This document shows, in pieces, positions 8,742 to 33,889 of a DNA stretch of 39,721 nucleotides. Both the position numbers and the translations under genes were made by a program. This stretch comes from Octopus bimaculoides (Eukaryota). Below the pieces are notes generated by a model that was not told the origin of the DNA, ran no database searches, and saw only the letters and a program-made list of their open reading frames with translations. Numbering within the stretch: position 1 is the first letter of the stretch; each line of letters starts with the position of its first letter. The DNA lies in assembly GCF_001194135.2 (NCBI RefSeq), contig NC_069001.1, positions 8,078,109 to 8,117,829 on the forward strand. The letters run 5' to 3'.

Positions 8742-9335
8742 TATTTGCATTGTATCATTCTATAAAGAAAGCTACTTTACAATACATGTACCTATTTATG
8801 CAGAAGCATAATGTCACAATGTCAGAAGTTGTCTTATGAAAGAAATATCTTATATGACAATAAATATGTCCACATAAGGAGAAGATATAATAACAAGCAC
8901 ATAACTACATATATATTTATATATGTATATATATAGTTTGTGAAATCAAATTATAACATCTTAGTTAAAATCAATCATTCTTAATACTTTCCAGAAGACA
9001 CTATTGTTTTATTTGATATTGTGTGTTAATGAGTGGGATGCTGCCACAACATCACTATACTTAATGCTGCAAATAAATCCGCAAAGAATAAAAAAATGAT
9101 TTTCAAAACATTGTAATTGGGTGTATGGAGGGTAACATATTCTGAATGCTATTTATATTCTTTCATGTGTAGTATGTATAGTCACAGGTACGGTTGTGTG
9201 GTTAAGAAGTTCAATTCCCAACCACATGGTTTTGGGTTCAGTCTCACTGCACAGCACCTTGGTCATTTGCTATAACCTCAGGCCACCCAAAGTTTTATGA
9301 ATGAATTTGGTAGATGGAAACTGAAAGAAAACCAT

Positions 9336-9369
<34 letters not shown>

Positions 9370-9491
9370 CAGGGTGTCCACAAAGTCTGGGTACATGGGG
9401 ATTAACACACTTTAAGAAATTATTTCTTATATTTAATTGGTTATGTTATGATTTTATTTACTCCATGTACCCAGACATTGTGGACACCCTG
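9370..9491. mobile_element. 122-bp Tc1/mariner-type MITE with TA target site
   Basis: 29-bp TIRs CAGGGTGTCCACAA(A/T)GTCTGGGTACATGG with 1 mismatch (9370-9398, 9463-9491), flanked by (TA)n; lies just after a family A SINE fragment. Confidence 0.85.
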
Positions 9492-15871: not shown

Positions 15872-16642
15872 ATGATGGAAAATGAATTATGTGGGAACCT
15901 GGTTAAGTGTAAAACAGAGCCTGAAAGTATTGATTTTCCTGAAAAGATGCTTAAAGAGATAAGAAAAACATCATATTACTGTGATATCTGTAAAAAGTCA
16001 TTTGCTCAAAAAAGTAACCTTACAGCTCATATACGTATTCATACGGGAGAAAAACCATACCAGTGTGATATGTGCGGTAAATCATTCTCACGAAACGATG
16101 ATTTAAGCATACATATTCGTCTTCATACAGGAGAGGAGCGACATCGCTGTGACATTTGTGGTAAATCATTTTCTCATGGAAGTACATTGACTACTCACAA
16201 ACGAACTCATACAGGAGAAAAACCATATCACTGTGATATTTGTGGTAAATCATTCTCTCAAAATTCTCACTTGACTAAGCACAAACGCATTCATACAGGA
16301 GAGAGACCATATCAGTGTCATATCTGTGGTAAATCATTTTCTCGCATATATACCTTAACTGCTCACATACGCATTCACACAGGTGAAAAGCCATATCATT
16401 GTGATATCTGTGGTAAACCATTCTCTCTAAAAAGTCACATAGCTTCTCACAGACCCGTTCATACAGGAGAGAAACCATATCACTGTGATATCTGTGGTAA
16501 ATCATTCTCTCAAAAGTATCATTTCAATAAACATATGTGTATTCATATGCAAGAGAAACCATTTCAGTGTGATATCTGTGATAAATCATTTTCTCAGAAA
16601 TGCCAGCTAAGTGCACATGTACGTGTTCATATAGAAGAGTAA
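15872..16642 (+). CDS. C2H2 zinc-finger protein ZNF3, 256 aa, 8 tandem fingers
   Basis: [32 protein letters not shown] leader, 8 fingers, ends HIEE*; acceptor TACAG at 15523. Confidence 0.93.
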
Positions 16643-21150: not shown

Positions 21151-21255
21151 CTAGACTGATAGAACACCTTCACGTCACCGAAAATTTCTTTAGTTAAATA
21201 TTAAATTGATATTGATCTTAGCCATAAGGCTAACGGTCAGTGCTATAATTATTTA

Positions 21256-23507
21256 CAGTAATACCTCGCTTTACGAGACCCGGGTTTACGAGTTTTATTC
21301 TATAATAAATATTAAAAAATGTTAAACAGTCATTTTGTGTGTGGCATCACTGGTTCTGACACGTCTACACATAGCGACGGAGTAAAATGACGGGATAAAG
21401 TTTCAATGTCTTAATTAGCACGTGCGCTTTGTTGAATGAGATTATAAGCTAATTCTTCGTGCTACATATTTTATATTGTATACGTGTACTTTACTATTTT
21501 CGGCATTTTGAAAAAACCCACACGATATGTCTAAACGAAAGTGTACAACCGATACCGACGGGAGCAAAAAGAAACGAAAAGCCATAACTTTAAAAACAAA
21601 GTATGAAATTGTAAAAATGCACGATGGCGGTACAACTGTGAAAGACATTTGTGACAGATTTTCACTTAAATCGTCGACTGTCTGCACAATTCTCAAAGAA
21701 AAACAGAAATATTTATCTCAAGTGAGAAATGCGCAGCCTTTGCAATCAACGTGGTCTCGTAAAAGAGATGCTGGAAGCATTATTCCGGAAATGGAAAGAC
21801 TTGTAAATGCATGGATAAGGGACACAACACAACGCATGAATATGACTGTTGATCAAGCGTCGATTCGTAGCAAAGCATTGTGTCTTTTCAATCTGCTTAA
21901 AGAAATGAAAGGTGACACAAACGAAACTTTTGTTGCGAGCAGAGGATGGTTTGTGCGATTTAAAAATCGACATGGGTGGCATGCTGTTAGAATGCAAAGC
22001 AAAGCATCAAACGCTGATCTCCATCCAGCAACAAAAAAATTTCCAGAAACATTGGCAAAAATAATTGAAGAAGGAGGCTACATGCCACAACTGATTTTTA
22101 ATGTCAGTGAAACAGGACTTTTCTGGAAACGTATGCCACCCAGAAGTTACATTGCTAAGGAAGAATCTGCGCTGCCTGGTTTTAAAGTTGCAAATGATCT
22201 ACTGACATTATTATTTGGAGGAAATGCATCTGGGGATTTTAAATTAAAACCAATGCTAGTTTATCGAGCGGAAAATCCTGGGGCACTCAAAGGTATCTTA
22301 AAAAGTACTCTTCCAGTCATATGGAAATCTAATGAAAAAGCTTGGATTACGACAACATTATTTGAAGAATGGTTTTCATATCACTTTGTGCCAGAAGTTA
22401 AGGAATATTGTGATAAGAATGAACTTCCATTTCATGCAATGTTGATTATTGACTATGCACCTAACCACCTTCCAATTCTGCAACATCGCCATCCTGATGT
22501 CAAAGTTATTTTTTTGCCTCGGGATACATCACTTTTGCAACCAATGGACCAGGGTGTTATTGCAACATTTAAAGCTCATTATTTACGCTACACATTTGCA
22601 ATGCTGAATGAAGAAACAGTCAAAGAAGGGGGACCTTCTGTAATGGAACTCTGGAAAAGTTACAACATTTATACTGCTGTAAAAATCATAAGAAAAGCAT
22701 GGGATAATGTCAGTGAAAAGAATATGAAGAGTGTTTGGAAAAACCTTTGCCCTCAATTTCTTACTGATTTTGAGAATTTTGAATCACTACAAGAAAATGT
22801 ACTAAAAGAAATTGTAAAGCTGGCAAATGAATTGAATCTCGACGTGTCAGCAAGTGACATAGATGAGCTGCTTCAATCACATAGTGACGAACTCACCAAC
22901 GAAGAACTTGTTGCAATGCAAGAGGAGGCAACAGCAGAAAAGGAAAAGGACACTGTTGATGAAACGCCAGTTAGTACGTTCAAATTGAAAGGACTCGAGG
23001 AAGCATTTCAGCATTTGGATAAAGCTTTGGAAATTTTTCAAGTACAAGATCCAAATTTTGAACGAAGTGCAAGAGTTTCTACTACCATAACAAATGCTTC
23101 TTTGTGTTACCGAAAAATTTATAGAGAGCAAAAATATGCTTCTTCTTAGCAAACAACTCTAGACTTGTTTTCTAAAAAAGAAATCTACAAGTCTGTCTTT
23201 GGGTGCTTGTGAATCAGTGACTGTGTCTACTACAAGTGATGGTGTGTGTGAGTGTAAGTGATTCAGAAAACAATTATAATATATTTTATAATAAATGATC
23301 TTGACATTCTTTTTACTTTACATTCTACTGTTGTTTTATTGCCATTTATTTACGAGTATTACAATTTTTATAGGTAAAATATCTTTCTGGGAACGAATTA
23401 CGATTTATAAAATTGCTACTATGGGAAATTAATGCTCTGTTTTACGAGTTTTCACTTTATGAGCAGTGTCCAGGAGTAAATTAACTCATATACCAAGGCA
23501 TTAACTG
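21256..23507 (+). mobile_element. Full-length pogo/Tigger DNA transposon (2252 bp) with decayed TIRs and TA target duplication
   Basis: TA|CAGTAATACCTCGCTTTACGAG on the left; right end reverse complement CAGTTAATGCCTTGGTATATGAG followed by TA (17/23 identical); subterminal TTTACGAG repeats and Tigger-like GGAACGAATTA. Confidence 0.85.
21527..23149 (+). CDS. Tigger/pogo-derived (TIGD1/CENP-B-like) protein, 540 aa: HTH_psq, CENP-B HTH and DDE_1 domains; first catalytic Asp replaced by Ser
   Basis: KRKAITLKTKYEIV HTH; ASRGWFVRFKNRH; IFNVSETGLFWKRMP (normally NVDETG); IIDYAPNH; LQPMDQGVI; uninterrupted frame. Confidence 0.9.
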   Translation: MSKRKCTTDTDGSKKKRKAITLKTKYEIVKMHDGGTTVKDICDRFSLKSSTVCTILKEKQKYLSQVRNAQPLQSTWSRKRDAGSIIPEMERLVNAWIRDTTQRMNMTVDQASIRSKALCLFNLLKEMKGDTNETFVASRGWFVRFKNRHGWHAVRMQSKASNADLHPATKKFPETLAKIIEEGGYMPQLIFNVSETGLFWKRMPPRSYIAKEESALPGFKVANDLLTLLFGGNASGDFKLKPMLVYRAENPGALKGILKSTLPVIWKSNEKAWITTTLFEEWFSYHFVPEVKEYCDKNELPFHAMLIIDYAPNHLPILQHRHPDVKVIFLPRDTSLLQPMDQGVIATFKAHYLRYTFAMLNEETVKEGGPSVMELWKSYNIYTAVKIIRKAWDNVSEKNMKSVWKNLCPQFLTDFENFESLQENVLKEIVKLANELNLDVSASDIDELLQSHSDELTNEELVAMQEEATAEKEKDTVDETPVSTFKLKGLEEAFQHLDKALEIFQVQDPNFERSARVSTTITNASLCYRKIYREQKYASS

Positions 23508-23689
23508 TAGTTTTTATCTCTCTCATATATACATGGATAAGATGAGTTTCAGTAGAATGCACTGCAAAATTTGTTCTGGCTTTCGGCACTTTGAGTTCAA
23601 ATCCCAAACTTCACTTTTTATCTTTTCCATCTTTGTAATCATCAACCCCTGGACATTTCTGTCTTGAGTTGTATGACTCATGCAGTTGA

Positions 23690-24146
23690 TTACCCAGTTT
23701 TTATGGCATATGGATGACCAAAATCAGAACATTCTCCTGGAACGGGACACCTGTCCATTGCAGGTTAACTCATTTACAGTTGAATGGAGCCACATAAAAC
23801 GAAGTACTTTGTTCAAGAATACAACGGTCCACCAAGTCTGGGAATTAAAATCACAATCTTGCAGTCATGAGTGCAACACTCTAACCACTCGGCCACATTC
23901 CTTCACCTGTCTTTCTGGGATCAATATTTTATCCTTTTACTTGTTTCAGTCATTTGACTGTGGCCATGCTGGAGCACCACCTTAAAGGGTTTTAATTGAA
24001 GAAATTGACCCCAGGACTTACTCTTGGTAAGCCTAGTACTTGTTCTGTTGGTCTCTTTTACCAAACTGCTAAGTTACAGGGATGTAAACACACCTTACCA
24101 GTTAGACAGACAGACACACAAATATATATATATATATATATATATA
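23690..24146 (-). mobile_element. SINE family G fragment followed by the 3' half of a family A SINE
   Basis: TGTTCAAGAATACAAC..GGGAATTAAAATCAC..CTAACCACTCGGCCAC; TTTCAGTCATTTGACTGTGGCCATGCTGGAGCACC. Confidence 0.6.
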
Positions 24147-26791
24147 NNNNNNNNNNNNNNNNNNNNNNNNNNNNNNNNNNNNNNNNNNNNNNNNNNNNNN
24201 NNNNNNNNNNNNNNNNNNNNNNNNNNNNNNNNNNNNNNNNNNNNNNNNNNNNNNNNNNNNNNNNNNNNNNNNNNNNNNNNNNNNATTTTATCCTTTTACT
24301 TGTTTCAGTCATTTGACTGTGGCCATGCTGGAGCACCACCTTAAAGGGTTTTAATTGAAGAAATTGACCCCAGGACTTACTCTTGGTAAGCCTAGTACTT
24401 GTTCTGTTGGTCTCTTTTACCAAACTGCTAAGTTACAGGGATGTAAACACACCTTACCAGTTAGACAGACAGACACACAAATATATATATATATATATAT
24501 ATACATGTTTAGAAATAAATGAGAGTTCTTTCACAAAGAAGAAAGAGCTGTTGGGGTTCCTCATTTATTTCTCTTCAGGGAGTTCATTGACATGCGTTTT
24601 GCTCCATTTATTATTATCCATATCTTCTCAAAATGTATCACTTAAACTTGGTATCTCTACCTGTAAAACGGCTGTGATATCTTGTTTTTTAGTGTAATTT
24701 TACTACCTCCGGTAACTATTAACGTATGTAAATTATCAAAAGTTTTAATAACTGAGATAATATTAATATATACATAAACTTATATATATATATATATACG
24801 ATAGGCTTCTTTTAGTTTTCGTCTACCAGATCCACTCACAAGGCTTTGCTAAGCTTACATTAAAACCTCTCAGTTCTATTATGTACATTAGTCAGACCTG
24901 TGTCATCTTCATTGTTGCTTTCACTACATTATTGTACAGCTCTAGTAATCCATTCATCTACACCTAGTTTCCTGAGTGAACACAAAATTACTGAATGCAG
25001 TATCCCATCAAAAACCATCTTTAATGCAACAAATAGCAGAAATAGTGATCCGCCCATAGCTAAGTACTTCTGCTGCTGTTACTTCACTAGGAAGATTGTA
25101 TCCATGTTGCCTCTTCTGGGCATGAAGCCAAACTGCATTTGATCTTGGTTTTCTCTGTTAAATCTAAATTGTGCTACTAACTTTTTCCAACTTTCATAAC
25201 CTGATTCAGTAGATTGATTTCTCTAAAACTTTTCTCTATTTAACCCATAAAGCATTGAGATTTGGACTTGCTTAGCATGGACTGCTGAGCACATTGAATT
25301 TTGTCAGAATAAAGCAACAAAGCTGACTCCACATCGTTTGCCACTGTTTCGAAATGAAACATAGATGCAATTTCTTCATTAGAGCACTGGAATTCCCAAG
25401 CACTATACATATATATTCCATATAGGAAAGACTTCTTTTTGTACCCCTCATAAAAGATTTAAAACTATTACACATGGTTTGATTTCCTACCGTGTCTTAT
25501 AATAATAATAATGAGAAAGTCATAAAAATGAAGAATTTTTATTAAAAAAAAAAAAAAATTTTCTTCTGTTTTATGTATATTCATGTCCCAATTTATCAAA
25601 CGTTAAGGCCTAAATTCCATAACTCTATGAAATTTGCCTAACCTTGGGACATGAATACATAATACAGAAATGAATTTTTTTAAAAATAGAAATTCTTAAT
25701 TTTTATGACTTTCTCATCATAATTAACTACTTTCTGTTTGTGGCTTTTCAGATGACTCCTAAGGCCTGTCTTACTCAGGACAGATGTGAACATAATTGTT
25801 ACATGTTGAATTGGGCTGTATGCCAATACATTCAGGCAAGTTAACATTAAGCCCCTAACAAACATATCTCTTGAGCTTTTCATACTTGCTACAATTTTGT
25901 TTGAATCCTTTCTTTCCATCATACAGTACTTCCCTTCAAGCTGATCAATCTAGAATGCAGTTTTCTCATCCATTTTCGACCTTCTCCAGTGTATTCTTGA
26001 TGCATTCATTATACCTTAACTTCAGTTTGTGGGCTGATCTTTGTGTTTTTCCCACACCACCACTTAACAACCAGTGTTTGGGTGTTTACATCCTCATAAC
26101 TTAGTGGTTCGGCCAAAGTGACCAGGAGAATAAATACCAAGCTTTAAAAGAAAAAAATAAGTGTTAGTCAAATACTGAGATAAGCTTTATCCAGTCTGAA
26201 CTTCCGTAAAGTATGTAGTTTTGAGCCAATGTTAGAAATTAATGTTTCCATGTTCTTGAAAAGCCAAAACTATGCAAGTTATAAGAGATCTGTCAATAGT
26301 TTGCACATTTATATTTTGGGGTTGAGACCCTGCTCTTCAGGGAAAAACTGTTAATATATTTTGCACTTGAAGTTCTGGGGTCAACTGGGCTTATTCATTT
26401 GGGAGTTAAGTAATTATCAGTTATATATTGGTGGCTAATACATGCCGTCTGCAATTATTTGGTATTTCTGTTACTGAAATGAAAAAGCAAATTATATCCA
26501 TCATGGTAGTTTGGAGAAAGAAATGTAACAACAGACAAAAATTGCAACAATTCAGTTATATTTTTATTATAGCTTCTATGTTGCCATGTTGTTTGTTCAA
26601 AAATGAAGAAATATCACAAATATAAGTTTATTTATTACAACCAACAAAGATAAAATAGTTTCAGATTTTAAATATACTAGGGCTTTGGGAATACAAGTTC
26701 CTGAGTTAGTCTGCCTCTCACTTGGCTATCATTGATTTATTGCCTACACATGTTCACTGGATAACCATTATGATTATAATTTAACCCTTTA

Positions 26792-27480: not shown

Positions 27481-28491
27481 TTATTCTGCAGCATGAATAC
27501 AGACATGTGTAGTCAAGTGACTTTTCTGAGAGAATGATTTATTGCAGATTTCACAGCGAAATGGCTTCTCTCCTGTATGAATGTATTTGTGTTTAGTTAG
27601 TGTACCATTTCGAGAGAATGATTTACCACAGGTATCACAGTGATATGGCTTCTCTCCTGTATGGATGTGTTTATGTTTAGACAGGTTACTTCCTTCTGAG
27701 AATGATTTACCACAGATATCACAGTGATATGGTTTCTCTCCTGTATGAATGCGTTTGTGTTTAGTTAAGTCACCACTTCGAGAGAATGATTTGTCACAAA
27801 TATCACAGTGATACGGCTCATCTCCTGTATGAATGTATCTGTGTGCAGTTAACTGCACTGTTATAGTGAATGATTTACCACAAATATCACAGCAATATGG
27901 CTTTTCTCCAGTATGAATGCGTTTGTGTATAGTTAAATCATGACTTTGAGAGAATGATTTATCACAGAACTCACAGTGATATGGTTTTTCTCCTGTATGA
28001 ATGCGCTTATGTGTAGTTAAGTGACTTCCTTCAGAGAATGATTTTCCACAGACATCACAGAGATATGGCCTCTCTCCTGTATGACTACGTTTGTGTATAG
28101 TTAAGGTATCATTTTGCGAGAAAGATTTACCACAGATGTCACAGTGATAAGGTTTTTCTCCTGTGTGAATACGGTTGTGAGTATTTAAATGACTTCTTTG
28201 TGAGAATGATTTACCACAGATATCGCAATAATATGGTCTCTCTCCTGTATGAATATATATATGACGAGTTAAACTAACACTTTGAGAAAAGGATTTACCA
28301 CAGACATCACAGTGATATGGTTTTTCTCCTGTATGAATACGTTTGTGAGTTGTCAGGTTACCTTTTCGAGAGAATGATTTTTCACATATGCCACAGTGAT
28401 ATTCTATTTTCCCTATCTCTTTTGGGATTTCATCAGTAAAATCAATTCGTTTACTCTGATTTACATTTAACATTGTACTTACATAATTCAT
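27481..28491 (-). CDS. C2H2 zinc-finger protein ZNF4, 336 aa, 11 tandem fingers, frameshift-derived N-terminus
   Basis: 11 fingers, ends HAAE*; [14 protein letters not shown] leader homologous to paralogs; acceptor AG at 28870-28869. Confidence 0.9.
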
Positions 28492-32119: not shown

Positions 32120-33889
32120 GGGTAACTAATGCGTTTCATTTTTGCGTGTGGAGAGAGAGAGAATCTTTCTACAAAGAAGCGATTTAAAATAAATATATCT
32201 TAAATGTGCTCGTGGAAAAATATTGTATCTTTTAAAAATATCCTTAATTGGCACTGTCATGCTCACTCGTCCACCTTATTAGAAAACACAAATTTAATAT
32301 AAAAACATATTTCCTGAAATTGCAAATTATTTAAAATATAAAAATATAATTTTCAACAGAGAGAATTTATCAAAATAGAAAACAAATGAAGTTTGAAGTT
32401 TAAAAATAATAGGATCGACCACTCACGACTAGCTAGCGCGGACGCGAGTACCCTTATACTCTGTGTTGTGTTTTCAAACGCATGGATATAGGTGTCAAAT
32501 TTGTTCCAATAACTTTCGAGTAATAGATAGATAGAGAGAGAGAGACAGACAGACATATAGCTGGCTTTGGCCAGTCATGGTATTAGCTGTCAGTAGCCAA
32601 AGAATCGACAGGCATGCAGGCAGACAGACAGATACTTCACTAGCAGTGAGCACTTTCACTTCTGACAGCTAATAGCATGACAGTGCCCCTTAATTTACAT
32701 ATTGTATGTTTGTTTTTTTTTAAATTGTTTTCTCCTCCGCAGTACTTATGCATTACTGTGTGTGAGAGAGAACTGAAAAGCATACAAAAATAAGTAAGCG
32801 GAATTTGCCAAGCTGTTCGCATTTAGTTCTACTGTGATGTCGTGTGCAACCTGTCAGTTCACATACTTTGATGGCATCAGAATTTGTTATATAAATGATG
32901 AAGAAAGTATTGTATTCCTCCGGGACCATGGTGTTCTGCCCACCAATATGATTTGTCCACACTGTCGGATTGAATGCGTGTATAGAAAAGAACAGTGTCT
33001 CTGGCAATGCATGAGCTACACGGTCACTAAATCTAAAAAAAGGCAGCAGTGTGATTATTCTGTATCGGACTTTGAAGGATCCTTTCTTGATAATGCCCGT
33101 ATTCCTCCGTGGAAAGTCGTTCTTTTCGTAAACGAATTTCTACGTAGTACTTGGAGTAATATCATAGAGACAACCCAGGAATTATTGTTTTCAAGAGCTG
33201 AAGAATGGAGGTCATTCTGTTGTGGAGTAACAGAAAACTGGCTTCACAAACAGGAACGAATTGGTGGAGAATCAGTTGAAGTTGAGATTGATGAGACCTT
33301 AATTGTCCACCGGAAACCCGGGAGGGGTAGGATTCTGAGCCAAGTTTGGTTGTTTAGTGGAATAGAGTGAACCAGTAAGCGTCGTTTCGTTGTGCCACTA
33401 ATAAATAAGAAGCGTGACAAAGCGACACTGGTTCCTCTGATCCAGTCATTTATCAAACCTGGCTCGGTTATTTATAGTGATACATGGGCTGCCTACAATG
33501 ATTTAAGCAGTTTGGGTTATCGCCATTACGTGATAAACCATTCTGAAAATATTGATCAACCAAATATACACATACAAAATATTGAACAATTGTGGAGGAA
33601 GATAAAATGGAGTATGAGAAGGCTGCCAAGTGTTGAAACAAAATATTTCCATCAATATCTGGCCAGATATTTATTTATTTCCTCAGAGAAGAATAAGAAA
33701 TTATTACTCCACAATTTTTTTCGAGAGGCAGCCCAATTATATGTACCCCTCTCAAGTCAGCCATGTCCTTCAACTACATAAGGACTCATGTCTCTTCTCT
33801 CTTTCATAGAAGGCTCTTTTTTTCTCCATAGTCTCTCATCTCTCTCTCTCCGTACCTACATGCACGGAAATGAAACGCATTAGTTACCC
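32120..33889 (+). mobile_element. Merlin (IS1595/IS1016-like) DNA transposon, 1770 bp, perfect 22-bp TIRs
   Basis: GGGTAACTAATGCGTTTCATTT at 32120-32141 and its reverse complement at 33868-33889; symmetric subterminal (GA)n/(TC)n; no 8-9 bp TSD recognisable. Confidence 0.88.
32837..33781 (+). pseudogene. Merlin/ISXO2-like DDE transposase, 314 codons, one in-frame TGA at 33368-33370
   Basis: Track ORFs 32834-33370 and 33392-33781 are in the same frame; Zn-ribbon CPHC..WQC..C; motifs VEIDET, IYSDTW, QNIEQLW; GIE*TSKRRF where GIER is expected. Confidence 0.85.

Follow-up and report, generated by a model that had tools for sequence, protein, structure and literature searches.

The window, a 39,721-nucleotide stretch of Octopus bimaculoides chromosome CM046621.1, carries an immobilised Tigger insertion whose helix-turn-helix (HTH) module has, on balance, probably been preserved by selection, as an early-stage, genus-level domestication for DNA binding. 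The preliminary description had proposed an immobile gene kept for DNA binding; synteny with Octopus sinensis, a shared D194S substitution and a dN/dS of 0.12 in the HTH region speak for this proposal, whereas a frameshift in the O. sinensis copy and an overall dN/dS of 0.42 speak against it. We consider the locus a credible but unproven host gene of a well-known kind. In vertebrates, flies and yeast there is ample documentation of transposases turned into DNA-binding proteins; for lophotrochozoans the claims are mostly at catalogue level. If confirmed, this locus would add a cephalopod case for which both synteny and selection can be cited. It would also be an unusually young one, in which the transposon ends are still visible, only the DNA-binding module is under constraint and the catalytic triad is disappearing step by step (S194 in both species, D309N only in O. 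sinensis), and it would therefore be useful for studying the onset of domestication. The gene would, moreover, become a candidate regulator in a lineage where zinc finger (ZNF) genes and transposable elements (TEs) are known to have expanded. Should it be no more than a fossil, it amounts to ordinary repeat annotation with no further consequence.

Structure of the element and its open reading frame

Positions 21256-23507 form a complete Tigger/pogo element of 2,252 bp with TA duplications on both sides (Table 1). The left end reads TA followed by CAGTAATACCTCGCTTTACGAG from 21256, and the right end reads CTCATATACCAAGGCATTAACTG up to 23507 followed by TA. The terminal inverted repeats (TIRs) had been described as 17/23 identical, the same count that is obtained from the aligned columns. 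Compared with L002, the closest intact relative and a Tigger element from assembly GCA_037975485.1, the 5' TIR has remained intact, and it is conserved with one mismatch in O. sinensis. The TIRs of L002 begin with the same 12 bases, CAGTAATACCTC, and its subterminal repeats (TTAACGAAC/TTAATGAAC) show an analogous layout; judged by this resemblance, the ends of the octopus element are genuine. The motif TTTAYGAG is found five times in the element, always on the plus strand and always at the ends (0.12 occurrences expected from shuffling), and these repeats, including the TTTACGAG copies, are presumed to be transposase-binding sites. The TA duplication and the TIRs, of which the 3' one is degenerate, place the element in the pogo/Tigger branch of the IS630-Tc1-mariner group.

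Table 1. Features of the Tigger insertion, in positions of the window
Feature	Position	Strand	Remarks
Left TA target-site duplication	21254..21255		TA abuts the 5' TIR; junction conserved in O. sinensis
5' TIR, CAGTAATACCTCGCTTTACGAGA	21256..21278	+	First 12 nt as in the perfect TIRs of L002
5' subterminal TTTACGAG direct repeats (presumed transposase-binding sites)	21270..21292	+	Two copies, 21270-21277 and 21285-21292; motif count
Transposase-derived ORF, intact, 540 aa	21527-23149	+	Uninterrupted frame
CENP-B_N-type HTH1, aa 14-65	21566..21721	+	Pfam PF04218, E=4.8e-5
HTH_Tnp_Tc5 HTH2, aa 87-150	21785..21976	+	Pfam PF03221, E=3.4e-11
Codon 194, AGT (Ser), first catalytic Asp site, NVDETG to NVSETG	22106..22108	+	Outgroup alignment
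DDE_1 catalytic-core homology, aa 226-404	22202..22738	+	Pfam PF03184, E=7.5e-40
Codon 309, GAC, second catalytic Asp, retained; Asn in O. sinensis	22451..22453	+	Alignment
Codon 341, GAC, third catalytic Asp, kept in both species	22547..22549	+	Alignment
Shared premature TAG, then C-terminal tail relic QTTLDLFSKK	23147..23179	+	Translations of both species
Three 3' subterminal TTTAYGAG repeats	23349-23356, 23441-23448, 23456-23463	+	Layout as at the right end of L002
Degenerate 3' TIR	23485..23507	-	17/23 match to the left arm, one gap
Right TA target-site duplication	23508..23509		Flanks the right end of the element

The uninterrupted frame of 1.6 kb noted previously corresponds to an ORF of 540 codons. 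The exact protein is present, as a predicted model, in the EukProt and MetaClust protein sets; the GCA_001194135.2 annotation does not list the ORF as a gene. All three domains (CENP-B_N, HTH_Tnp_Tc5 and DDE_1) score above the Pfam gathering thresholds, and the two N-terminal HTH domains reported earlier are indeed present. A basic patch, KKKRK, opens the CENP-B_N-type HTH1, and the crystal structure of the CENP-B DNA-binding domain (1HLV) aligns to residues 16-149 (E=4.6e-6). By homology, the protein has the domain set of a pogo/Tigger transposase, and its best homologues are Tigger/TIGD1-like proteins. The described location in a ZNF cluster also agrees with the several multi-finger C2H2 ORFs within the window.

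Changes in the catalytic triad

Tc1/mariner-pogo transposases become catalytically inactive when any one residue of their DDE/DDD triad is mutated; the first aspartate is carried by the DET motif, as exemplified by D153 of Sleeping Beauty. The equivalent residue, position 194, is an aspartate in 10/10 outgroup Tigger proteins and is encoded by GAT in L002; the change of NVDETG to NVSETG by GAT to AGT therefore stands as first reported. Codon 194 of O. sinensis is also AGT, hence D194S is older than the species split. The triad is S194-D309-D341 in O. bimaculoides and S-N-D in O. sinensis, and the intact DDD triad of an autonomous, active element is lacking.

The remaining motif changes of the preliminary description (KDRLT to NDLLT, ENPRA to ENPGA, DNAP to DYAP and PPNTTS to PRD-TS) were all recovered in the ORF. 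K223N/R225L, R252G and N310Y occur only in O. bimaculoides; D194S and the loss of one residue from PPNTTS, the motif that lies before codon 341, are common to both octopuses. Nine or more of the 10 outgroups agree at 107 positions; at these, six residues changed in both octopuses, five only in O. bimaculoides (K223N, R225L, R252G, N310Y and P315L) and seven only in O. sinensis, D309N among them; as far as this alignment indicates, the DDE_1 core is decaying at conserved positions. The spacing of 31 residues between D309 and D341, which had been listed with the altered features, was verified, with both residues present, but it falls within the DD29-36D range that is normal for Tigger elements (PMC7386202).

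The stop codon of the ORF is itself premature relative to the Tigger family. Both octopuses translate ASS, the stop and then QTTLDLFSKK, and the outgroups go on with Q(T/K)xLDxFFKK and further residues.

The orthologous insertion in Octopus sinensis

A syntenic orthologue had been proposed as a test of the domestication hypothesis, and the O. sinensis locus (L001) carries the same insertion at the identical site, with an identical left junction and a colinear ZNF cluster. The two loci are colinear over approximately 24 kb with 82-94% nucleotide identity, and the flanking ZNF genes, with a dN/dS of 0.03 and a dS of 0.12-0.24 between the species, appear from these values to behave as true orthologues. 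The copy thus occupies a stationary orthologous position in two congeneric species, as expected of a domesticated gene according to the criteria of Casola 2008 and Gao 2020. Both octopuses have the derived loss-of-function states S194 (AGT), a deletion of one codon and an identical premature TAG.

Disabled orthologues had been named as evidence against a host gene, and on this point the result is mixed: in O. sinensis a 1-bp frameshift within HTH2, at codon 119 (about 4,576,327 of CM016879.1), breaks the frame into parts of 142 and 416 codons, but there are no stops otherwise. This frameshift may reflect a recently disabled gene or an assembly error. The RefSeq model XP_029648908.1 covers only the downstream part of the O. 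sinensis copy and has an odd 3' splice.

In O. sinensis the element ends ~147 bp early, with the 3' TIR gone, and a SINE-like repeat follows. Given that the 3' TIR is degenerate in O. bimaculoides and the 3' end is absent from O. sinensis, the element is immobile, even though the 5' TIR and the target-site duplications (TSDs) persist.

Selection on the coding sequence

All the dN/dS values reported here derive from one pairwise comparison, that of the O. bimaculoides and O. sinensis orthologues. For the whole ORF the maximum likelihood (ML) value is 0.42, four methods give 0.38-0.44, the NG86 bootstrap interval is 0.26-0.54, and the flank-adjusted value is 0.56. Ka/Ks between the orthologues is therefore significantly lower than 1, as the preliminary description had anticipated for a domesticated gene and as is the case for purifying selection in the sense of Gao et al. 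2020 (PMC7386202). However, the constraint on the whole gene is several-fold weaker than in accepted pogo-derived genes, for which dN/dS ranges from 0.06 to 0.14 (PMC7386202).

The analysis per domain places the lowest dN/dS in the HTH region. For codons 1-160 it is 0.10-0.13 (ML 0.125), with 26.5 synonymous and 12.5 nonsynonymous differences, distributed 6/4/30 among the three codon positions; under a mutation model calibrated on the flanks, which includes CpG and ts/tv terms, the adjusted value is 0.18 (binomial p=4e-7). Within this region, codons 1-70 differ between the species by 13 synonymous and two nonsynonymous changes (dN/dS 0.03-0.06), and codons 71-160, which include HTH2, have a dN/dS of 0.12-0.18. 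Fisher tests of codons 1-160 against the remaining ORF give p values of ~1e-4 or lower. The DDE core has a dN/dS of 0.56 (ML; range 0.55-0.64) and the C-terminus one of 1.1 (range 0.9-1.3); the nonsynonymous changes observed in these two regions, 42.7 and 28, respectively, compare with 42.4 and 23.8 expected under neutrality, so that amino-acid change in both is statistically indistinguishable from neutral. A conserved HTH region together with a relaxed DDE core and C-terminus is the pattern expected of a gene kept for DNA binding.

Along the element nucleotide divergence stays level at ~8-9%, and the element's identity of 91.4% equals that of the noncoding flank (91.6%). Gene conversion was considered as the source of the approximately twofold excess of N-terminal synonymous differences over the flank expectation, and it was discarded given that the dS of the neighbouring host ZNF genes is similar; since these genes also reach 0.12-0.24, the noncoding alignments understate the local neutral rate.

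Retention of the reading frame

No stop-creating differences were found between the species, against 6.7 expected (P=0.0013). The ORF has three indel events in 1,623 nt; the orthologous noncoding flank (11.3 kb) predicts 17, or 10.7 if only non-slippage events are counted; among flank windows of equal length only 3% have three or fewer events, and none has one or fewer frameshifting events. The O. bimaculoides copy was flagged precisely for being open. The O. sinensis lineage, unlike that copy, was not picked for its intactness, and considered alone it shows one disabling change versus ~6.9 expected (P=0.008). A neighbouring IS1595-like TE relic, used as a negative control, has a dN/dS of ~0.8, no indels and one stop in 945 nt; because this neutral relic is also nearly open, frame retention alone does not discriminate at this locus.

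Relatives and copy number

In a search of 1.84 billion representative proteins, no match other than the O. sinensis orthologue has more than 58% identity; this representative set collapses relatives with more than 50% identity and hence gives no copy number. The nearest proteins other than the O. sinensis one, at 58% identity or less, belong to other organisms, and no active Tigger relative of Octopus was seen among the predicted proteins. A search with the N-terminal 213 aa, in which 61 candidates were scored, returned four distant matches, and one with a neighbouring 256-aa ZNF protein returned only generic C2H2 proteins, the O. sinensis orthologue being absent. No further copies of the TIRs were found in the window and the other loci examined, which covered 64 kb of octopus DNA. 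Among predicted proteins there is thus no sign of a multi-copy family.

Interpretation and alternative explanations

The sequence of events that we propose starts with a single, now fixed insertion of the Tigger family (pogo superfamily) that entered the genome before O. bimaculoides and O. sinensis split. Prior to that split the copy lost D194, one residue of PPNTTS and, through the premature stop, its C-terminal tail. Afterwards, selection would have preserved the bipartite HTH region and kept the reading frame open during most of this period, and the catalytic core and the C-terminal region would have drifted under little or no constraint. The product would be a nuclear, catalytically dead, sequence-specific DNA-binding protein, which may recognise Tigger-type terminal or subterminal TTTACGAG-like repeats and act there as a repressor or regulator. 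It would represent an early-stage domestication of the CENP-B/TIGD/Abp1 kind at the level of the genus, with the O. sinensis gene either recently disabled or misassembled. In its most specific form, this reading states that the domestication is restricted to Octopus, that only the HTH module is under host selection as the dead core decays in frame, and that the protein is a binder of Tigger-type repeats; we put this forward tentatively, as quite possible. Such a binder, seated within an expanded octopus C2H2-ZNF cluster, may repress or recruit at related MITEs.

It is unlikely, albeit to be taken seriously, that the insertion is an ordinary fossil, that is, an old Tigger copy that was fixed without any host function and is open by chance, with a skew in its 5' third that does not stem from host selection. 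The neutral behaviour of the DDE core and the C-terminus would agree with this, as would the frameshift in O. sinensis, the flat divergence equal to that of the flank, the nearly open IS1595-like relic nearby and the ongoing loss, in both lineages, of residues that do not vary among relatives, with the catalytic D309 among those lost from O. sinensis; Gao et al. also viewed TIGD1-like sequences that are multi-copy and narrowly distributed as akin to pseudogenes (PMC7386202). The skew between synonymous and nonsynonymous changes in codons 1-160, however, spans both HTH domains and goes beyond chance, and the O. sinensis lineage, which was unselected for intactness, has far fewer disabling changes than expected. 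A candidate mechanism for the skew in a fossil is the ectopic conversion of the 5' third from a once-active family member under transposon-level selection, but no donor copy is known, no step in divergence occurs at any conversion boundary, and the synonymous divergence of codons 1-160 (0.28) is in line with that of the host ZNF genes. A constraint on the 5' third that is independent of the sense protein, imposed by an antisense exon or by a DNA or RNA element, is very improbable. The ORF does lie within the range of a minus-strand gene model of 1,013 aa in O. bimaculoides, antisense ORFs of 83-84 aa overlap it, and by frame arithmetic one of them (21442-21696) shares the wobble positions of the sense frame. 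The other (21746-21997) is in a different phase, in which the third positions of the sense frame are first positions of the antisense frame, yet the sense constraint continues through HTH2; on these codon-phase grounds the antisense exon was rejected. A DNA or RNA element would depress change at third positions, and 30 of the 40 differences fall there; the clear HTH homology of the sense frame argues against both versions.

The constraint could also serve the transposon family, if a non-catalytic binder regulated or titrated active Tigger relatives in the manner of KP-type repression or overproduction inhibition, for only as long as that family stays active; we regard this explanation as improbable. 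The conservation of the DNA-binding region with loss of catalysis and the persistence of putative binding repeats at the element's own ends are compatible with it, and TcMar-Tigger elements belong to the repeat content of cephalopods (PMC8967140). Nevertheless, no active Octopus relative was seen, the nearest proteins being those of other organisms mentioned above. This explanation merges with the domestication of a TE repressor, because a fixed, stationary copy needs selection on host fitness.

Comparison with known pogo-derived systems

The vertebrate genes TIGD1-7, JRK, JRKL and CENP-B have the same domain order as the octopus protein (CENP-B_N, HTH_Tnp_Tc5, DDE_1), and the pogo/Tigger-derived genes of vertebrates likewise show stationary orthologous positions, lost catalytic residues and purifying selection on the protein. 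They differ in the strength of that selection, as given above by dN/dS. In the octopus copy, unlike in the vertebrate genes, only the DNA-binding region is constrained; the TSDs, the subterminal repeats and the 5' TIR are still recognisable; and the gene is known from two congeneric species only, one of them with a frameshift. The octopus protein is not an orthologue of vertebrate TIGD1: it is 43% identical to human TIGD1 and 56-57% identical to its closest relatives, which are intact Tigger transposases, so that transposon copies of other taxa are closer. Having its own TIRs and TSDs, the octopus insertion is separate from the TIGD1 domestication.

The preliminary description knew of no cephalopod case, a view that is out of date: Mukherjee and Moroz (2023) claimed a pogo to CENPB-type domestication in Octopus with seven O. 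bimaculoides genes (PMC10027918). Their catalogue was built from homology and phylogeny and includes neither synteny nor dN/dS tests, and most of its octopus CENPB members carry BTB/POZ domains (PMC10027918). The peptide NVSETG does not appear in the examined portion of its supplement, and the octopus gene is therefore probably outside that catalogue (PMC10027918). A literature search specifically for the S194 octopus Tigger gene found no report.

L002 (2,320 bp vs 2,252 bp of the octopus element), whose protein P0003 is 56% identical to the octopus one, illustrates the intact state. The two elements share the TA duplications, TIRs starting with CAGTAATACCTC, subterminal direct repeats and the same ORF layout; in contrast, L002 has perfect TIRs, intact NVDETG, KDRLT, ENPRA, DNAP and PPNTTS motifs and the full C-terminal tail, whereas the octopus copy carries S194, stops prematurely, ends in a degenerate 3' TIR and sits at a fixed orthologous site.

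Two further systems bear on the possible function. In fission yeast, the CENP-B homologues Abp1, Cbh1 and Cbh2, themselves of pogo origin, bind Tf retrotransposons and silence them; as pogo-derived DNA binders that act on repeats they could serve, by analogy, as a functional model for the octopus protein, although the domestication events are unrelated. Transposase derivatives that only bind DNA are also able to repress their own family, as does the KP repressor of the P element. Repressors of the KP type resemble the octopus protein in being catalytically dead and in keeping the domain that binds the transposon ends, but they are encoded by mobile, polymorphic copies, whereas the octopus gene is a fixed, apparently single orthologous locus.

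Structure of the Tigger element and its relatives

The sequence observation of the preliminary description is confirmed, since all the listed motif changes are present and S194, the serine replacing the first catalytic aspartate (NVDETG to NVSETG), was verified against L002, a full-length relative element from GCA_037975485.1, and against ten outgroup Tigger proteins; its codon is AGT in the window and GAT in L002, and the ten outgroups carry Asp. The 1.6-kb frame is uninterrupted as described, and the TIR arms match in only 17 of 23 columns, with one gap. Three of the five listed changes (NDLLT, ENPGA and DYAP) are private to O. bimaculoides. The spacing of 31 residues between the second and third catalytic positions, D309 and D341, is also present, but it is normal for Tigger elements, which range over DD29-36D (PMC7386202). 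The ORF ends at a premature stop, after which the codons still read QTTLDLFSKK, the tail translated in relatives. ORF residues 16-149 align with 1HLV, the sequence of the crystallized CENP-B DNA-binding domain (E=4.6e-6).

Five TTTAYGAG motifs are confined to the two ends of the window element (0.12 expected by chance). L002 is the closest full-length relative fetched; its protein, P0003, is 56% identical to the octopus protein, and its 2,320-bp element shows TA duplications, perfect TIRs, the first 12 bases of the octopus element and the same arrangement of subterminal direct repeats. Judged by the match of these TIRs, duplications and repeats, the ends of the octopus element are genuine; L002 looks like an intact, possibly active element. 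The next best matches come from amphibians (e.g. Pelobates fuscus, 57%) and arthropods, a patchy distribution that would fit horizontal transfer, a familiar event among Tigger elements. Among 5.8 billion clusters the sole close protein, at 83-84% identity, is P0002 from O. sinensis (XP_029648908.1), and besides it an exhaustive scan of 1.84 billion representatives found no protein above 58% identity. TcMar-Tigger elements are already recorded among the repeats of cephalopods (PMC8967140).

Features of the window, of the orthologous O. sinensis locus (L001) and of the relative element (L002); differences are at codon positions 1/2/3 between the two octopus copies
Feature	Location	Strand	Details
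Complete transposon	21256-23507		2,252 bp; TA-CAGTAATACCTCGCTTTACGAG...CTCATATACCAAGGCATTAACTG-TA; ORF within
Transposase-derived ORF	21527-23149	+	540 codons, uninterrupted; ML dN/dS 0.42
CENP-B_N	aa 14-65		Pfam
HTH_Tnp_Tc5	aa 87-150		Pfam
DDE_1	aa 226-404		Pfam, E=7.5e-40
Both HTH domains	codons 1-160		ML dN/dS 0.125; differences 6/4/30
DDE core	codons 161-405		ML dN/dS 0.56; differences 24/14/25
C-terminus	codons 406-540		ML dN/dS 1.1; differences 13/13/10
C2H2 zinc-finger gene	15872-16642	+	flanks element
C2H2 zinc-finger gene	27481-28491	-	flanks element
IS1595-like ORF	32837-33781; L001 20968-21912	+	314 aa; ISXO2-like DDE_Tnp_IS1595 domain
~380-bp insertion	L001 about 8975-9373		5' subterminal region of O. 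sinensis element, adjoining TTTACGAG repeats
~360-bp segment	20329-20690; L001 11998-12361		upstream of element in O. bimaculoides; downstream, and absent upstream, in O. sinensis; 90% identical
SINE-like repeat (...TTTACTTGTTTCAGTCATTTGACTGTGGCCATGCTGGAGCACCACC...)	23925-24094, 24285-24453; L001 1609-1760, 7916-8076, 11456-11594		multiple copies; window copies around N gap
L002 Tigger element	L002 288-2607 (GCA_037975485.1)		perfect TIRs, full DDD triad, 588-aa ORF

The orthologous locus in O. sinensis

The syntenic orthologue that the preliminary description called for was found: colinearity between L001 (CM016879.1) and the window extends for ~24 kb, in blocks 82-94% identical that include the ZNF genes and the IS1595-like ORF, spaced alike in both species, and every base of the Tigger element's left junction is conserved. 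The ZNF genes on either side of the element show a dN/dS of 0.03, a dS of 0.12-0.24 and no indels between the species. By colinearity, junction and these ZNF values the loci are truly orthologous, and the insertion is older than the species split. Because DNA identity among paralogues of the cluster reaches only about 70-79% and the flanking orthologues are very strongly conserved, the cluster members appear to be ancient and each under constraint of its own, and nothing points to rapid turnover. Positions 5872-26642 of the window, traced by an exact look-up of the neighbouring 256-aa zinc-finger protein, are identical to O. bimaculoides GCA_001194135.2, CM046621.1, 8,083,980-8,104,750. The annotation of that assembly covers all of these 20.8 kb with one gene model on the minus strand, whose product has 1,013 aa; the Tigger ORF and two ZNF genes of the plus strand fall within it, and the model probably chains ZNF genes together. 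The annotation contains no call for the Tigger ORF, although its exact protein is present in EukProt/MetaClust.

Both copies share S194 with an identical AGT codon, the one-codon deletion in PPNTTS and the premature TAG, and therefore all three changes arose before the split. D309N is found only in O. sinensis, where a 1-bp deletion at codon 119 splits the frame into parts of 142 and 416 codons, both without a stop; the RefSeq model takes in the downstream part alone, starting at M127, and is oddly spliced close to the 3' end. The ends of the element are immobile; the O. sinensis copy has lost its last ~147 bp, 3' TIR included, and a SINE-like repeat stands in their place. At the ~380-bp O. 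sinensis insertion, one TTTACGAG repeat unit has apparently been lost. For the ~360-bp segment there are two explanations: a small mobile element that each lineage acquired by a separate insertion, or a difference created locally by rearrangement or by assembly.

Tests for selection on the reading frame

Nucleotide identity between the orthologues is 91.4% in the ORF vs 91.6% in 11.3 kb of noncoding flank, and the distribution of the ORF changes is not neutral. The NG86 bootstrap interval for whole-ORF dN/dS is 0.26-0.54; because the ts/tv ratio and CpG bias NG86 estimates, expected counts were taken from a mutation model calibrated on the orthologous flanks. In the N-terminus, the model predicts 11.9 synonymous and 31.2 nonsynonymous changes, and the observed counts are 26.5 and 12.5 (adjusted dN/dS 0.18, binomial p=4e-7), and this region differs from the rest of the ORF (Fisher's test p=8e-5). 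The DDE core (synonymous 20.3 observed vs 15.0 expected, nonsynonymous 42.7 vs 42.4) and the C-terminus (8 vs 9.3 and 28 vs 23.8) show no significant departure. The neighbouring host ZNF genes have the same dS, so the surplus of synonymous change relative to the flanks is nothing unusual: the noncoding DNA that can be aligned gives too low a neutral rate here. Among the 107 DDE-core positions conserved in at least nine of the ten outgroups, 5 were replaced since the split in O. bimaculoides and 7 in O. sinensis, approximately the neutral rate.

No stop-creating difference was found, vs 6.7 expected under the mutation model (P=0.0013). The flanks have 10.5 indel events per kb, or 6.6 without slippage-type events, and the ORF has three in 1,623 nt, two of them in frame; because flank indels are clustered, sliding windows were also used, and 3% of flank windows of ORF length have at most three indel events and none has at most one frameshifting event. 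Since the window copy was flagged for being open, the fair test is the O. sinensis lineage only, with one disabling change vs ~6.9 expected (P=0.008). The IS1595-like ORF, conserved in synteny, is intact in O. sinensis and has a single in-frame stop, at codon 179, in O. bimaculoides; it shows a neutral-like dN/dS of ~0.8, 12.9% nucleotide divergence and no indels. Because this ORF, too, stays nearly open despite neutral-looking substitutions, frame retention counts for less at this locus than one would conclude from the Poisson numbers, and the domain-specific dN/dS carries more weight.

Discussion

The best-supported reading, which we consider somewhat probable, is that a catalytically dead Tigger copy has stayed in place and that host selection has preserved its DNA-binding module while its catalytic core decays. 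The proposal of an immobile gene kept for DNA binding is thus partly supported: synteny, the shared S194 and the constraint on the HTH region speak for it, and the codon-119 frameshift in O. sinensis against it. The protein would be made, would enter the nucleus by way of a conserved KKKRK patch, may bind Tigger-type repeats such as TTTACGAG, and could act as a repressor or regulator.

The main alternative is rather unlikely: a mere fossil, whose open frame reflects ascertainment and whose N-terminal signal comes from conversion by another family member. Divergence shows no step along the ORF, and nothing in the protein collections and the 64 kb of octopus DNA searched points to a donor. A repressor serving the transposon itself, a reading which shades into that of host selection, seems improbable, and an antisense or nucleic-acid-level constraint is very improbable, contradicted as it is by the codon phase and the free third positions.

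The preliminary description knew of no cephalopod case; that pogo elements were domesticated into CENPB-type genes in Octopus has, however, been claimed in general terms (PMC10027918), without synteny or selection tests, and the octopus Tigger protein was not found in the part of its supplements covered here. A domesticated pogo gene is recognized by a syntenic orthologue, a Ka/Ks below 1, an ORF intact in all carriers, a single copy and expression (PMC7386202). The octopus ORF has a syntenic orthologue in a different species and a Ka/Ks below 1, weakly so outside the HTH region; it is open in O. bimaculoides and frameshifted in the O. sinensis assembly. It is a candidate domesticated pogo-type gene, and the locus is of value mainly because it would show domestication in a lophotrochozoan at a young and partly degraded stage. 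Although orthologous to none of CENP-B, TIGD, JRK or the fission-yeast Abp1/Cbh class, with 43% identity to human TIGD1 and TIRs of its own, its protein may work in a manner like theirs.
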